Origin: Octopus bimaculoides
Lineage: Eukaryota
Assembly: GCF_001194135.2 (NCBI RefSeq)
Contig: NC_068994.1
Coordinates: 47,661,873-47,725,872 of the forward strand
Direction: 5' to 3'
Length of the DNA stretch: 64,000 nucleotides
The position numbers and the translations under genes are program-made. This document shows, one piece after another, positions 20,133-64,000 of the stretch; the first letter of the stretch is position 1; every line of letters starts with the position of its first letter. The notes under the pieces were generated by a model. It was given only the letters and a program-made list of their open reading frames with translations. It was not told the origin of the DNA and ran no database searches.

Positions 20133-20226
20133 ATGTTTGACATAACAACCACCGGAAAACTCGCTCTTTTTGTTGCCCTTCCAACCACATTTGTCTTGCT
20201 TTATTTGTTACTCCGGCACACAGATG
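20133..20226 (+). CDS. TDRKH: Coding exon 1: start codon and N-terminal transmembrane (mitochondrial outer-membrane type) anchor
   Basis: aacaatcATG (A at -3) reads MFDITTTGKLALFVALPTTFVLLYLLLRHTD+G, then donor G|gtaagt at 20227. The hydrophobic K-x-A-L...P...L-Y-x-L-x-R pattern resembles the TDRKH N-terminal anchor. Phase 1 matches exon 2. Confidence 0.8.
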
Positions 20227-20229
20227 GTA

Positions 20230-58600: not shown

Positions 58601-61600
58601 TTTCTTAGAATCTTGGAAAGACACTGTGTCAGATCCTCTCGAAGATGCTGATATTCTAAGTACTGATGATTCTGACAATTTTATGCAATCTAGACATGCA
58701 GAGGTTGTTGCTAAATCTTCAACTTTTCCTATTAAGAGAAATTGGGATTCCGATGACAACATTTATGTGTCTGTTGATGACATTGAAAATGAACTTGGTA
58801 TAACAGAAGTAACTAGAAAATTACCATCTATATCTCACCACAAAATTGTCACAGAATCTTCTGACATATTGTTAGGTTCTTCTAATTCTGGTGGGAAACA
58901 TCAAGCACCTTCTCGAGATATTGAAGAAAATAGGAAAGAGAGTAATTCTGAAAAGGGAGAGATATCTGATGACAAAACATCTGCTGAAAATAACATCAGT
59001 GGTAGACATTTTGATCTTTCTCTCCTGTCAGACTCAATGCTTCAAGACAAAACATTAATATCTCAGAATATTTCTTTTACAGATGAATACAGTATTGATA
59101 GACGTGAGTCTTTTCTAATACCTGATACCAATTTCCGCACAATTGAACGAAGTTCCAAAAGTATTTCCGAAGATTTTATGAAGCCTCATGGATTCTTCCA
59201 GTCAGATACCACAAGTGAATCCAAAAGCATTGATCATATTGATGATTCACCTTCCAAACCTGAAGGTTCTTTGATTAAAGACACTGATATCAAGAAAATG
59301 ACATGTGACACCATCCAATTGGATGAAGAACCTTCAGGAAAAGCAGATGAAATAAAAACTTTGGAAGAAGAGTCTGATGAGAAAGGTGACGATTATGATG
59401 ATCAAGATGATGATGATATATGGTTGACTATGCTTTCTACTTCTCCAGAAAATGGTGAGATGGAAGAGTATGACAAGAATGAGGAAGTGATGTCTGATAA
59501 TGACGACTCATCTACTGACAAAGAAACTAGCAGTCATTATGAATATCAAGATTCAAATGCAATAGATACACAAACTAGTGTCTTTGAGAAAACATCTGTA
59601 CATCAGACAACTGAAGATGGGAAACTATTCTCAGAGAAAGAAATTGTTGAAAGAGAACATCAGGATTTATGTCACAAACAGACAACGGAAGACAGTGAAT
59701 ATTCAGATAAGGAAGATGCCGAATTTGTTGATGCAGAAGAGGAGCTTAAAATGGAGTTTGTTGATGCAGAGGATGGTAGTGAAACAGAAGAAAATACTTC
59801 ATACACTAAAGTGGATTATTCAGCTCTTGAAGAGGATAATGGCTTGAAAGAGAAAGACCCAACTTTAGCTCAGGAAAGACCAGAAGATGAAGAGCCTGCG
59901 GAAACTTCCTTACAATCTTGTGAAGATATAGTGTCAGGTCATCTTAAAGATGTTGATATTCTAAGAACTGAAGATCATCAAATATCTGGTGATTTAAATA
60001 CCAAGGGACAAGATTTTGAAACAAAGGCTTTTGGTAGATTGACTTCTGAAAATGTAGGCAGAGAGAGATTTGATGATCATGATGTGACATCAGTGAAAAT
60101 TGAACCATCAGATGACAACTTGGAATATTCGGCTCTTGAAGAGGATAATGATTGGGAAGAGAAAGATCCCACTTTAGTCCAGGTAAGAACAAAAGTGGAA
60201 GAACCTGTGCAGACTTTCTTAGAATCTTGGAAAGATACTGCATCAGATCCTCTCGAAGATGCTGATATTCTGAGTACTGAAGAACAAATACCTGATGATG
60301 TAAAAACCAAGCAGCAAAATATTGACACAAAAGGTATTGATGTGAAGAAATTGGAATCAATATTTATGTCTGAGAATATTGTCCATGAGAGTGTTGGTGA
60401 TGATGTGACAACATTCAGAATTGAACCATCAGATGACAACTTGGAATATTCAGCTCTTGAAGAGGATAATGACTGGAAGGAGAAAGATCCCACTTTAGTT
60501 CAGGTAAGACCAAAAGTGGAAGAACCTGCAAAGACTTTCTTAGAATCTTGGAAAGACACTGTGTCAGATCCTCTCGAAGATGCTGATATTCTCAGTATTG
60601 ATGATTCTGACAACAATGTGATACACTCAAGACATACAGAAGTTGTTGCTAAATCTTCAACTGTTTCTTGTACAAAACAATGGGATTCCGATGACAACAT
60701 CTATGTGTCTGTTAATGACATTGAAAAGGAACTTGGTATACCAGACAAAACTAGGGATTTACCATCTGCATCTCACTACAAAGATGTCACAGATTCTTCT
60801 GAAGAGAAGGCAACCCATGATGAAACAGATGTTTGGTCAATGTTTTATACACCTATGACACCTAGAGAAGATGACAATAACTTGGAATATTCAGCTCTTG
60901 AAGAGGATAATGATTGGGAAGAGAAAGATGCCACTTTAGTTCAGGTAACAAGTGAAGTAGAAGAACCTATACAGACATTCCTGGAATCTTGGAAAGATAC
61001 TGCATCAGATCCTCTTGAAGACGCTGATATTCTCAGTACTGAAGACCAAATACCTGATGATGGAAAACCCAAAGACCAAGGTCTTGATACCAAAAACATT
61101 ACTACAAAGAAATTGGAATGTATATCTACCTCTGAGAGTATTGTCCGAGAGAGTGTTGGTGATGATGTGACATCACTCAGAATTGAACCATCAGATTACA
61201 ACTTGGAATATTCAGCTCTTGAAGAGGATAATGACTGGAAGGAGAAAGATCCCACTTTAGTTCAGGTAAGAACAAAAGTGGAAGAACCTGCAAAGACTTT
61301 CTTGGAATCTTGGAAAGATACTGTGTCAGATCCTCTCGAAGATGCTGATATTCTGAGCACTGAAGACCAAACACCTGATGATGTAAAACCTAAAGACCAA
61401 AATGTTGACACTAAAGTTATTGCTACAAAGAAATTGGAATGTTTATCTACATCTGAGAGTATTGTCCGAGAGAGTGTTGGTGATGATGTGACATCTGTCA
61501 GAATTGAACCATCAGATTACAACTTGGAATATTCAGCTCTTGAAGAGGATAATGACTGGAAGGNNNNNNNNNNNNNNNNNNNNNNNNNNNNNNNNNNNNN

Positions 61601-64000
61601 NNNNNNNNNNNNNNNNNNNNNNNNNNNNNNNNNNNNNNNNNNNNNNNNNNNNNNNNNNNNNNNNNNNNNNNNNNNNNNNNNNNNNNNNNNNNNNNNNNNN
61701 NNNNNNNNNNNNNNNNNNNNNNNNNNNNNNNNNNNNNNNNNNNNNNNNNNNNNNNNNNNNNNNNNNNNNNNNNNNNNNNNNNNNNNNNNNNNNNNNNNNN
61801 NNNNNNNNNNNNNNNNNNNNNNNNNNNNNNNNNNNNNNNNNNNNNNNNNNNNNNNNNNNNNNNNNNNNNNNNNNNNNNNNNNNNNNNNNNNNNNNNNNNN
61901 NNNNNNNNNNNNNNNNNNNNNNNNNNNNNNNNNNNNNNNNNNNNNNNNNNNNNNNNNNNNNNNNNNNNNNNNNNNNNNNNNNNNNNNNNNNNNNNNNNNN
62001 NNNNNNNNNNNNNNNNNNNNNNNNCTCAGAATTGAACCATCAGATTACAACTTGGAATATTCAGCTCTTGAAGAGGATAATGACAAGGAAGAGAAAGATC
62101 TCACTTTAGTCCAGGTAAGAACAAAAGTGGAAGAGCCTGTGCAGACATTTTTGGAATCTGGGAAAGATACTGCATCAGATCCTCTTGAAGATGCTGATAT
62201 ACTCAGTACTGAAGACCAAATACCTGATGATGGAAAACCCAAAGACCAAGGTCTTGATACAAAAAATATTGCTACAAATAAATTGGAATGTATATCTACC
62301 TCTGAGAATATTGTCCACGAGAGTGTTGGTGATGATGTAACATCAGTCAGAATTGAACCATCAGATGACAACTTGGAATATTCAGCTCTTGAAGAGGATA
62401 ATGACTGGAAGGAGAAAGATCCCACTTTAGTTCAGGTAAGACCAAAAGTGGAAGAACCTGCAAAGACTTTCTTAGAATCTTGGAAAGATACAGTGTCAGA
62501 TCCTCTCGAAGATGCTGATATTCTGAGCACTGAAGACCACACACCTGATGACGGAAAAACCAAAGACCAAAATGTTGACACTAAAGTTATTGCTACAAAG
62601 AAATTGGAATGTTTATCTACATCTGAGAGTATTGTCCGAGAGAGTGTTGGTGATGATGTGACATCAGTCAGAATTGAACCATCAGATTACAACTTGGAAT
62701 ATTCAGCTCTTGAAGAGGATAATGACAAGGAAGAGAAAGATCTCACTTTAGTCCAGGTAAGAACAAAAGTGGAAGAGCCTGTGCAGACATTTTTGGAATC
62801 TGGGAAAGACGCTGTGTCAGATCCTCTCGAAGATGCTGATATTCTAAGAACTGATGATTCTGACAATGTGATACAATCTAGAGACATAGAAGTCATCCCA
62901 ATGTCCTCAACTGTTCCATGTAATGATAAATGCGACATTGGTGATGACATCTATGTGTCTGTTGATGACATTGAAAATGAACTTGGTATAATTGAAGGTA
63001 CTATGGATTTACCATCTGCATCTCACCATAATGAGGCAACAGATTCATCTGAAGCAAAGACAACTAGTGATGAAAATGATGTTTGGTCAATGTTTTATAC
63101 ACCTGTGACACCTGGTGAAGAAGATGACAACTTGGAATATTCAGCTCTTGACGCGGATAATGATTGGGAAGAGAAAGATCCCACTCTTGTTCAGGTAAGA
63201 ACAAAAGTGGAAGAACCTGCAAAGACTTTCTTAGAATCTTGGCAAGATAATGTGTCTGATCCTCTCGAAGATGCTGATATTCTCAGTACTGAAGAACAAA
63301 TATTTGATGATATAAAACCTAAAGACCAAAATGTTGATACTAAAAACATTGCTACAAAGAAAGTGGAATGTATATCTACTTCTGAGAATATTGTCCAAGT
63401 GAGTGTTGGTGATGATGTGACAACATTCAGAATTGAACCATCAGATGACAACTTGCAATATTCAGCTCTTGAAGAGGATAATGATTGGGAAGAGAAAGAT
63501 CCCACTTTAGTTCAGGTAAGAACAAAAGTGGAAGAACCTGCAAAGACTTTCTTGGAATCTTGGCAAGATACTGTGTCTGATCCTCTCGAAGATGCTGATA
63601 TTCTAAGTACTGAAGACCAAATATCTGGTGATGTGGAAACCAAAGAGTTTTCTACATCTGGAGGAAAAGAACATCGCATGAAACATTTAGCTCTTGAAGA
63701 GGTTAGTGACTGTGAAGATAATGTACCTATGGACTCTTCAGTAGAACATCATGAAATACTTGAATATGATTCAATTAGTGATAGTGAAAATGAAGAGAAT
63801 TATTCACCACCTTTACAATTTTCAGCTGACAACGACTGCCATTTAACCCAACTGAACCATGGTTTTGCGGGAAAAAAATCTTTAGTTACAAAAGCTGTAA
63901 ATACTGATGATAATGAAGTTTGGAATATGTATTTTACTTCCCATCAAAAAGACAGTGAATATGCAGAAATAGAGAAGTATCCACTGGAAGATGTGGAAAG
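52689..64000 (+). CDS. TDRKH: Giant coding exon 11 (at least 11.3 kb including gaps): acidic Ser/Thr/Asp/Glu-rich, probably disordered tail with tandem 107-aa repeats
   Basis: Acceptor ttttctaatatttgtaccatttctttacag|GTG, phase 0, 1015 nt after the exon 10 donor. Open in segments 52689-56045, 56772-57902, 58303-61563 and 62025-64000. The frame changes only across N-gaps, and the frame is still open at the window end (YAEIEKYPLEDVE). Confidence 0.8.
56046..56771. other. Assembly gap (726 N) inside repeat array
   Basis: Run of N flanked on both sides by DTVSDPLEDADIL repeat sequence. Confidence 0.99.
57903..58302. other. Assembly gap (400 N) inside repeat array
   Basis: Run of N flanked by repeat units. 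Confidence 0.99.
61564..62024. other. Assembly gap (461 N) inside repeat array
   Basis: Run of N flanked by repeat units. Confidence 0.99.

Follow-up and report, generated by a model that had tools for sequence, protein, structure and literature searches.

Work on TDRKH in mouse, fly, and silkworm has dealt with a small adaptor that anchors PIWI proteins and a trimmer of PIWI-interacting RNA (piRNA) on mitochondria. The family members, known as TDRKH or TDRD2 in vertebrates and Papi in Drosophila and Bombyx, contain an anchor, two KH domains, and one extended Tudor domain in that order, followed by a short C-terminal tail, with a total length of about 470-630 residues. Another protein, AKAP1 (D-AKAP1/AKAP121/149, spoonbill in flies), embodies the related idea of an RNA-binding module on a mitochondrial scaffold: it combines a mitochondrial outer-membrane anchor and a long disordered region with KH and Tudor domains, and its disordered region sits between the anchor and a single KH domain. 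From mouse and silkworm, TDRKH is known as a mitochondrion-anchored MIWI receptor upstream of PNLDC1 trimming, which binds the N-terminal RG motifs of PIWI proteins and recruits the trimmer PNLDC1 (PMC10943014). Here we analyze a stretch of 64,000 nucleotides from Octopus bimaculoides (the window; contig NC_068994.1, positions 47,661,873 to 47,725,872 of the forward strand, numbered below from its first letter), which contains a gene with the same domain order. We consider it likely that this is the octopus copy of a molluscan TDRKH/Papi gene, in which the anchor-KH-KH-Tudor module is spliced to a giant acidic tail, with the roles proposed below. Unlike TDRKH and Papi, the octopus gene would add a terminal exon of ~20 kb encoding ~6,700-6,900 acidic residues, so that the giant isoform, with a predicted ~7,200-7,650 residues, departs from the short tail typical of the family. 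Full-text literature searches for TDRKH/Papi in cephalopods, or for a giant form of it, found no paper describing either.

The small exons of the gene encode a complete anchor-KH-KH-Tudor module. A sequence-only reading of the window had named ten small exons, totaling 461 codons, and the start of a giant exon. All of these are found at the positions given there, with AG/GT borders and joined in frame, and two small conserved exons had been overlooked. These are exons 2 and 11 in our numbering (Table 1), and they bring the module to 507 codons, with a stop-free upstream coding sequence of 1,521 bases. The corresponding proteins of Argonauta hians and Octopus sinensis contain 28 residues after exon 1 and 18 residues before the last small exon. 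Exon 2 was located by tblastn with the Argonauta protein (P0001) and an O. sinensis protein (P0002), and exon 11 is included in the protein models of both species. The two exons lie in islands of conservation with Argonauta (29424-29524, in an otherwise unalignable intron, and the isolated 47836-47902) with 84-90% identity. Exon 11, which lies inside the extended Tudor domain and has no counterpart in TDRKH/Papi, is probably a cassette exon.

By tblastn, the product of exon 1 shares 97% identity with the start of the Argonauta and O. sinensis proteins. It carries a hydrophobic signal-anchor, KLALFVALPTTFVLLYLLL, with a Kyte-Doolittle maximum of 2.09 (19-residue windows) at residues 9-27, and the next 31 residues contain nine Lys/Arg and one Asp/Glu. 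Signal-anchored outer-membrane proteins typically begin in this way, with a hydrophobic helix followed by basic residues. Pfam assigns KH_1 in two stretches (68.9 bits, cut-off 21.5) and TUDOR (85.2 bits) to the module. The O. sinensis model uses two further small exons, which correspond to ~42540-42647 and 46484-46522 in the window and which we left out of the gene as probably not real coding exons. They have AG/GT borders, but they join out of frame and lead to a stop because the A-run in the window has six A rather than seven, and they have no match in Argonauta or gastropod proteins.

Structural databases support the identification of the gene as TDRKH/Papi-type made in the sequence-only reading. 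In the PDB, the highest-ranking sequence matches, with E-values of 3e-23 to 1e-18, all come from extended Tudor domains: those of human TDRKH (6pi7, 6b57, and 5j39), Drosophila Papi (5ygb), and Bombyx Papi (5vqg). These rank ahead of TDRD1 and SND1, and a TDRKH KH domain is also among the KH matches. The octopus protein shares with TDRKH a leucine at the matching position of the first cage-forming strand (AVCL in octopus, AAPL in human). The alignment to 6pi7 extends through NINEELVKMGHA, which indicates that exon 12 encodes the end of the fold. The word-indexed protein searches, run with the N-terminal module and with the junction and tail, returned 2-4 proteins per query. No second octopus TDRKH-like protein was among the top matches listed by the searches with the module or by the search of representative proteins described below.

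The module is joined in phase 0 to the giant exon, through a donor at 51673 (CAAGAG/GTACGA) and an acceptor at 52689 (TTTCTTTACAG/GTGCTA), exactly where the earlier reading had placed them. Its claim of a stop-free exon also held, as no stop occurs in any sequenced base from 52689 to the end of the window. The part of the giant exon inside the window spans 11,312 positions, of which 9,725 are sequenced, and its codons are rich in Asp, Glu, Ser, and Thr. The motif FPWAWAYNEE, at 52809-52838 inside the giant exon, opens the tail. Comparison with Argonauta places the start of the exon precisely: the 300 bases that follow the acceptor are 92% identical, but the 300 that precede it only 44%, and of the latter just the last ~35 bases of pyrimidine tract are conserved. 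Since conservation begins at the first exon base, coding starts at a 3′ splice site rather than at a start codon.

The same junction and layout are found in Argonauta, O. sinensis, Patella, and Haliotis, which bears out the proposed fusion of a TDRKH module to a giant acidic repeat-bearing exon. The Argonauta protein P0001 (626 residues) contains the junction LSQQ/VLQSEGFGSTESL (VLQSEGFGS), and the gap-free Argonauta locus (L001) shows the same acceptor followed by 6,679 codons before a stop. In a search of 1.84 billion representative proteins, we found an O. sinensis protein (P0005) and Patella vulgata proteins of this kind. P0005 (6,301 residues), which is encoded on an O. sinensis chromosome, extends from the Tudor domain across the mini-exon and over the entire tail. 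The Patella 'uncharacterized protein' LOC126815462 isoforms X1 and X2 (XP_055955913 and XP_055955914; 7,645 and 7,595 residues) carry an N-terminal KH-Tudor part and a giant acidic tail. Haliotis rubra XP_046545484 (1,333 residues) contains KH-KH-Tudor, then EFPWAWAYNEED, and then an acidic tail. This model is truncated, because in the draft Haliotis locus (L003:79528-92308) the acidic open frame continues for ~10 kb beyond the annotated stop, in eight frame-shifting pieces, and runs off the locus as fetched.

Table 1 Features of the TDRKH/Papi-like gene in the window
Feature	Positions	Strand	Content	Borders and remarks
Exon 1	20133..20226	+	ATG start; 31 codons plus one base (MFDITTTGKLALFVALPTTFVLLYLLLRHTD)	GTAAGT donor, phase 1
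Exon 2 (new)	29434..29517	+	28 codons; basic flank after the anchor (VGRHLLRRGKRSARLLSHRLNIGQKLIA)	AG/GT; phase 1 at both ends
Exon 3	34258..34379	+	Acidic/serine linker and start of KH1	
Exon 4	34775..34976	+	Remainder of KH1 and start of KH2	
Exon 5	35756..35895	+	KH2	
Exon 6	36536..36650	+	Linker	Tandem donors at 3′ end: GTAAGT at 36651, GTAGTC 4 bases on
Exon 7	38263..38468	+	N-terminal extension of the extended Tudor domain	
Exon 8	39206..39378	+	Tudor core (QWYRARV, VDYGYNEEV)	
Exon 9	40415..40479	+	Extended Tudor domain (LSLPYQAVECYLANIKPK)	
Exon 10	41244..41398	+	Extended Tudor domain, staphylococcal nuclease (SN)-like part	
Exon 11 (new)	47839..47892	+	18-codon octopod mini-exon (VTWCNLWLRAYTKRAAAK)	AG/GT; phase 0 at both ends
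Exon 12 (exon 10 of the sequence-only reading)	51563..51673	+	Last helix of the extended Tudor domain (NINEELVKMGHAEW) and linker	Phase-0 donor
Giant exon	52689..64000	+	3,240 sequenced codons after the acceptor	Runs past the window end
107-residue unit region	55260..63760	+	Tandem 321-bp units with unique inserts; 17 cores	Contains three gaps
FFAT-like pair	59721..59774	+	EFVDAEE and EFVDAED in acidic context	Lead only

The giant tail is not specific to octopus. The sequence-only reading had called it lineage-specific, and this applies only to its 107-residue repeat unit, which is confined to octopods. The tail itself and the opening motif [FY]PWAWAYN[DE]E are common to cephalopods, a patellogastropod, and a vetigastropod, which makes the tail old within Mollusca. 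Among 154 proteins examined, this motif lies ~40-85 residues after the Tudor end in mollusc proteins only. The only tail islands detectably shared by octopods and Patella are the PWAWAY motif and one containing LKLETLYFI. When a hidden Markov model of the distal tail, built from Octopus and Argonauta, was compared with Patella, Haliotis, and amphioxus, LKLETLYFI alone was significant (independent E-value 4e-5). On these comparisons of sequence, the gene is a mollusc-wide giant form of TDRKH rather than an octopus-specific fusion.

Several observations weigh against this reading, or against parts of it. The junction is supported by conservation and by gene models of other groups, some of which may be ab initio predictions. 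In the Argonauta model P0001, only 120 codons of the giant exon are used before an internal GTAAGC donor splices to a distal 3′ exon. This donor (GAGGAA/GTAAGC, EE/VS; window 53043-53054, L001:35209-35220) is kept in three octopods, and its Argonauta product may be a real exitron-type isoform or an artefact of the predictor. O. sinensis is annotated with two adjacent proteins, P0002 (257 residues) and P0005, and P0005 omits exon 12. The giant isoform could thus be a minor product. We also looked for a canonical AATAAA or ATTAAA poly(A) signal in the intron after exon 12 and found none there. The GXXG loops of both KH domains are degenerate in the window, with GTNR (IIGTNRSSL, at 34330-34350) in the first and GNNY (LIGNNYQTV, at 34960-35775) in the second. 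Argonauta has GTNR and GKNS, Haliotis has GRQG and GRNG, and the second loop of Patella is GRGG (the first KH domain is cut off in that isoform). Because both octopod loops are degenerate, unlike those of TDRKH/Papi, the octopod KH domains may bind RNA differently or no longer, and the RNA-binding part of the TDRKH mechanism may not transfer. Finally, the alignment behind an AlphaFold2 model of a core-linker-core segment of the tail was shallow, with seven near-identical rows; the model itself speaks for disorder, with a mean predicted local distance difference test score (pLDDT) of 42.9 and a predicted template modelling score (pTM) of 0.10.

Some of these points would fit a locus with two units. 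One would yield a short TDRKH-like product that stops short of the giant exon, or even of the Tudor domain; the giant acidic protein would come from its own transcripts, which start within or after the Tudor exons, and the full protein would be rare or absent. The end of P0002 and the start of P0005 lie 70 bases apart in one exon, the Argonauta model has only 626 residues, and Patella has an isoform of 469 residues. However, the split in O. sinensis follows from the choice of a splice donor. P0002 uses the second of the tandem donors of exon 6, 4 bases downstream, which shifts the frame and leads to SKCSC and a stop in the next exon. The sequence around these donors (AAAAA/GTAA/GTAGTC, 36645-36660) is identical in both Octopus species, and in both the in-frame GTAAGT donor is the better match to the consensus. 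P0005 itself links Tudor to tail, the Patella and Haliotis proteins hold KH, Tudor, and tail in one chain, and upstream of the giant-exon acceptor conservation is limited to the splice signal. As exon 12 encodes the end of the Tudor fold, its omission from the O. sinensis model is probably an error. We therefore regard two separate units as unlikely and favor one gene with a spliced giant isoform. It is worth noting that the tiny 3′ exon joined by the internal donor in the Argonauta model lies ~5.4 kb past the stop of the giant exon.

A short product of the same gene is suggested by Patella. The Patella 'tudor and KH domain-containing protein isoform X3' (469 residues) matches the giant isoforms residue for residue as far as SSLFE, after which it closes with VPQIEA and a stop, and both the X1-X3 numbering and the identical shared sequence indicate that it comes from the same gene as the giants. 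The sequence-only reading had asked whether a paralogue of normal size exists. For Patella at least, the protein that NCBI names as TDRKH looks like an isoform of the giant gene. In the window, reading through donor 51673 gives VRESPSLTI and then a stop. Judged from the orthologues, the octopus gene probably also makes a short, ordinary TDRKH by leaving out the giant exon; because no canonical poly(A) signal follows this donor, we infer that form from the orthologues only.

We also considered whether the gene might be an AKAP1-type anchor, with a mitochondrial anchor, a helix binding protein kinase A (PKA), a KH domain, and a Tudor domain, rather than TDRKH. A beetle 'KH domain-containing protein akap-1' is weakly matched (E-value 6.5e-11), and the part of the distal tail past the window end includes a conserved amphipathic segment (IIEEEISLLLSEIVAMASE at residues ~3730-3760 of O. 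sinensis P0005, with the counterpart HLEEEIVHLMNEILSVVSA in Patella), a candidate helix whose hydrophobic spacing, judged by eye only, recalls that of helices binding the PKA subunit RII. The architecture, however, differs from AKAP1 in its main features. Two KH domains follow the anchor after ~50 residues, without a long spacer between anchor and KH and without the helix before a single KH domain that marks AKAP1, and the disordered part is C-terminal and roughly ten times longer. Moreover, the best solved relatives are all TDRKH/Papi, and the NCBI name of the short Patella isoform is TDRKH. An AKAP1-type gene is thus very unlikely, and we retain the assignment to TDRKH/Papi.

The assembly of the window deserves attention, since it has 13 N runs (at about 36% G+C), and either a misjoin of TDRKH exons to an acidic open reading frame or a frame broken at gaps might be suspected. 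Three of the gaps lie in the giant exon (56046-56771, 57903-58302, and 61564-62024) and the remaining listed ones are intronic; the program-made gap list that accompanied the sequence-only reading had two in this exon, and the third, of 461 N, is a seventh gap absent from that list. The sequenced DNA falls into four stop-free pieces at 52584-56045, 56774-57902, 58305-61563, and 62025-64000, each of which has 17-165 stops in its two alternative frames. With the N runs as written, the open frame of the pieces is 2, 1, 2, and 2 (index mod 3), that is, it differs across the first two of the three gaps. Arrays with a period of 321 bp, detected by Tandem Repeats Finder, reach the edges of all three gaps. 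We aligned the sequence bordering each gap on either side with a reference 321-bp unit, and the missing lengths in repeat register are 280, 168, and 254 bases plus multiples of 321. These lengths are 1, 0, and 2 mod 3, compared with 0, 1, and 2 for the gaps as stated, which is precisely the correction needed for one frame. Because the gaps lie within 321-bp arrays and filling in register restores the frame, the frame breaks are artefacts of estimated gap sizes.

The junction itself is free of this problem. No gap occurs in 50186-56045, so the interval 51673-52689, where the sequence-only reading had asked about a misjoin, is continuous sequence. The order of small exons and giant exon is also the same in two independent gap-free assemblies, those of Argonauta (L001) and O. 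sinensis (L002). The window is 86-96% identical to the O. sinensis chromosome in aligned unique stretches, and differences at the protein level mark it as a separate Octopus species. An assembly artefact is, in our view, highly improbable, and the junction can be taken as a feature of the gene.

The full protein is larger than could be seen in the window. The sequence-only reading predicted 3,700-4,200 residues; judged from the orthologues, the figure would be ~7,200-7,650. The window pieces are colinear with the Argonauta tail and reach its residue ~3,825, so that ~2,800-2,900 more codons would follow past the window. In Argonauta, a tail of 6,679 residues and an N-terminal module of ~510 give a total of ~7,190. 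The O. sinensis values are ~6,937, ~507, and ~7,440, and the Patella total is 7,645. It is a striking observation that these totals are near-equal across Argonauta, Octopus, and Patella though the repeats differ. The full product would be roughly 0.8 MDa, and the terminal exon is about 20 kb in gap-free relatives. The giant exon of O. sinensis, with 20,812 bases, is read in three frames owing to two single-base deletions in A-runs within repeats (L002:35490-35525 and 37700-37770). These deletions are most likely assembly errors, and the ~900 residues by which the database model falls short of the exon are probably due to them.

Several measures indicate that the tail is maintained as protein. 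Between Octopus and Argonauta, the ratio of non-synonymous to synonymous substitution rates (dN/dS) over the first ~760 aligned tail codons is 0.29/0.66 = 0.44. Among eight indel-free 107-codon units of the window, 28% of synonymous and 7.5% of non-synonymous sites differ in the 51-codon core, a ratio of the proportions (pN/pS) of 0.26, and the linker of the same units has a pN/pS of 0.61. Over the distal 2,780 residues, O. sinensis and Argonauta share 58% identity, with islands of 40-150 residues at 80% identity or higher. By these measures, the tail is under purifying selection. The idea that the long frame is non-coding, as a satellite, a low-complexity tract, or a decayed element that lacks stops by chance, could appeal to the repetitive, compositionally biased, Pfam-free tail, but it can hardly be true given 6,679 stop-free codons at ~36% G+C with dozens to hundreds of stops in the other frames, the selection on the tail between genera and in repeat cores, and unique islands so well conserved between Octopus and Argonauta.

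Tandem Repeats Finder reports a period of 321 bp, confirming the 107-residue repeat of the sequence-only reading. Each unit contains a core of 51 residues, LEYSALEEDNDW[KE]EKDPTLVQV..TFLESWKDT.SDPLEDADIL, of which there are 17 copies in the window, 22 in P0005, and 28 in Argonauta, and none in Patella or Haliotis. The Haliotis tail has a repeat of its own (containing AVESSEFAPGGWFDNVEDGQEIGAEILTVDGQ), which resembles the Patella repeat (containing LLYFDFGDS and ENMEIVEIDGVLTFV). The tail is strongly acidic, with an isoelectric point of 4.1-4.4 and a net charge of -511 for the window part and -942 for the Argonauta tail. No Pfam domain lies above threshold in any tail piece of the window or in the whole Argonauta tail. 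Alpha_adaptin_C (25.1 bits, cut-off 25.4), LRRNT_2, and DUF5680 (no single stretch passing) were set aside as noise, being sub-threshold or driven by composition. With these properties and the low-confidence structure prediction, the tail is best read as a disordered polyanion carrying short conserved motifs. Among these are seven [DE][IV]Wx[MKR][FY][YF] motifs. The core was also compared with the patterns for kinesin W-acidic, acidic dileucine, LC3-interacting region (LIR), and PEX14-type WxxxF/Y motifs; none fits cleanly, and we treat them as no more than leads. Several Lys-rich patches and an Arg/Ser-rich C-terminus occur in the distal tail, outside the window.

Among described proteins, the tail resembles membrane-anchored acidic disordered binders, namely organellophagy receptors (a concept set out in PMC12431859) and tethers such as PTPIP51 or VPS13 that bear motifs of the FFAT type (two phenylalanines in an acidic tract), in combining an anchor with a negatively charged disordered chain that carries short aromatic-acidic motifs. 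To our knowledge, its scale, with thousands of residues and more than 20 repeats, has no counterpart among such receptors. The FFAT-like pair of the octopus tail (Table 1) matches 6 of the 7 core positions of EFFDAxE, the FFAT consensus as reviewed (PMC8306308). It is present in O. sinensis genomic DNA and in Argonauta and absent from gastropod tails, and is thus an octopod-only feature of the tail.

If the gene works as its relatives do, the anchor would place the protein on the mitochondrial outer membrane facing the cytosol, and the KH-Tudor module would hold PIWI proteins and the pre-piRNA trimmer there, by analogy with mouse and silkworm TDRKH. For the giant isoform, we propose with low confidence a tail that stands out from the surface of the mitochondrion as a polyanionic chain with ~20-28 copies of the 51-residue aromatic-acidic core. 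It might then serve as a multivalent docking scaffold or spacer, for example for inter-mitochondrial germ-granule material or organelle contacts, which is likewise a low-confidence suggestion; the sequence-only reading had similarly suggested a scaffold for nuage or organelle contacts. As a more far-reaching and tentative possibility, a ~0.8-MDa TDRKH isoform may have been kept since before the cephalopod-gastropod split, with the polyacidic tail of ~6,700-7,100 residues acting as a long multivalent brush or tether on mitochondria that sets the spacing or composition of germ granules or organelle contacts, a function beyond piRNA trimming that is not known from model organisms. If a giant isoform is indeed conserved across the phylum, either the mitochondrial piRNA platform can bear a very large extra scaffold, or a germline gene has gained a second, unrelated job. 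PIWI-pathway factors also occur in mollusc soma, as TDRKH is listed in a snail central nervous system proteome (PMC11705228).

Public database entries for the proteins described here already exist under the labels 'uncharacterized' or 'hypothetical', and for three of the four species these entries are split or truncated. Because annotations divide the gene into two proteins in O. sinensis and shorten it to 626 residues in Argonauta and 1,333 in Haliotis, orthology tables and expression counts for mollusc TDRKH are likely wrong.

Elsewhere in the window, open reading frames such as 17101-17946 and those in introns have no Pfam match. The introns and flanks are rich in microsatellites and homopolymer-like tracts (CT-rich, (CA)n, (TCTC)n, and T/A-rich; for example 19524-19784, 20231-20842, 32018-32731, and 43058-43400), which account for spurious long entries in the mechanical list of open reading frames. 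The next called gene downstream in Argonauta (L001:66390-70317) is on the opposite strand and matches Pfam ATP-synt_E, the mitochondrial ATP synthase subunit e; its counterpart in octopus would lie past the end of the window. A short element encoding GLSRLYRPQCVTGT is found at 34981-35151 and again at 45851-45988.

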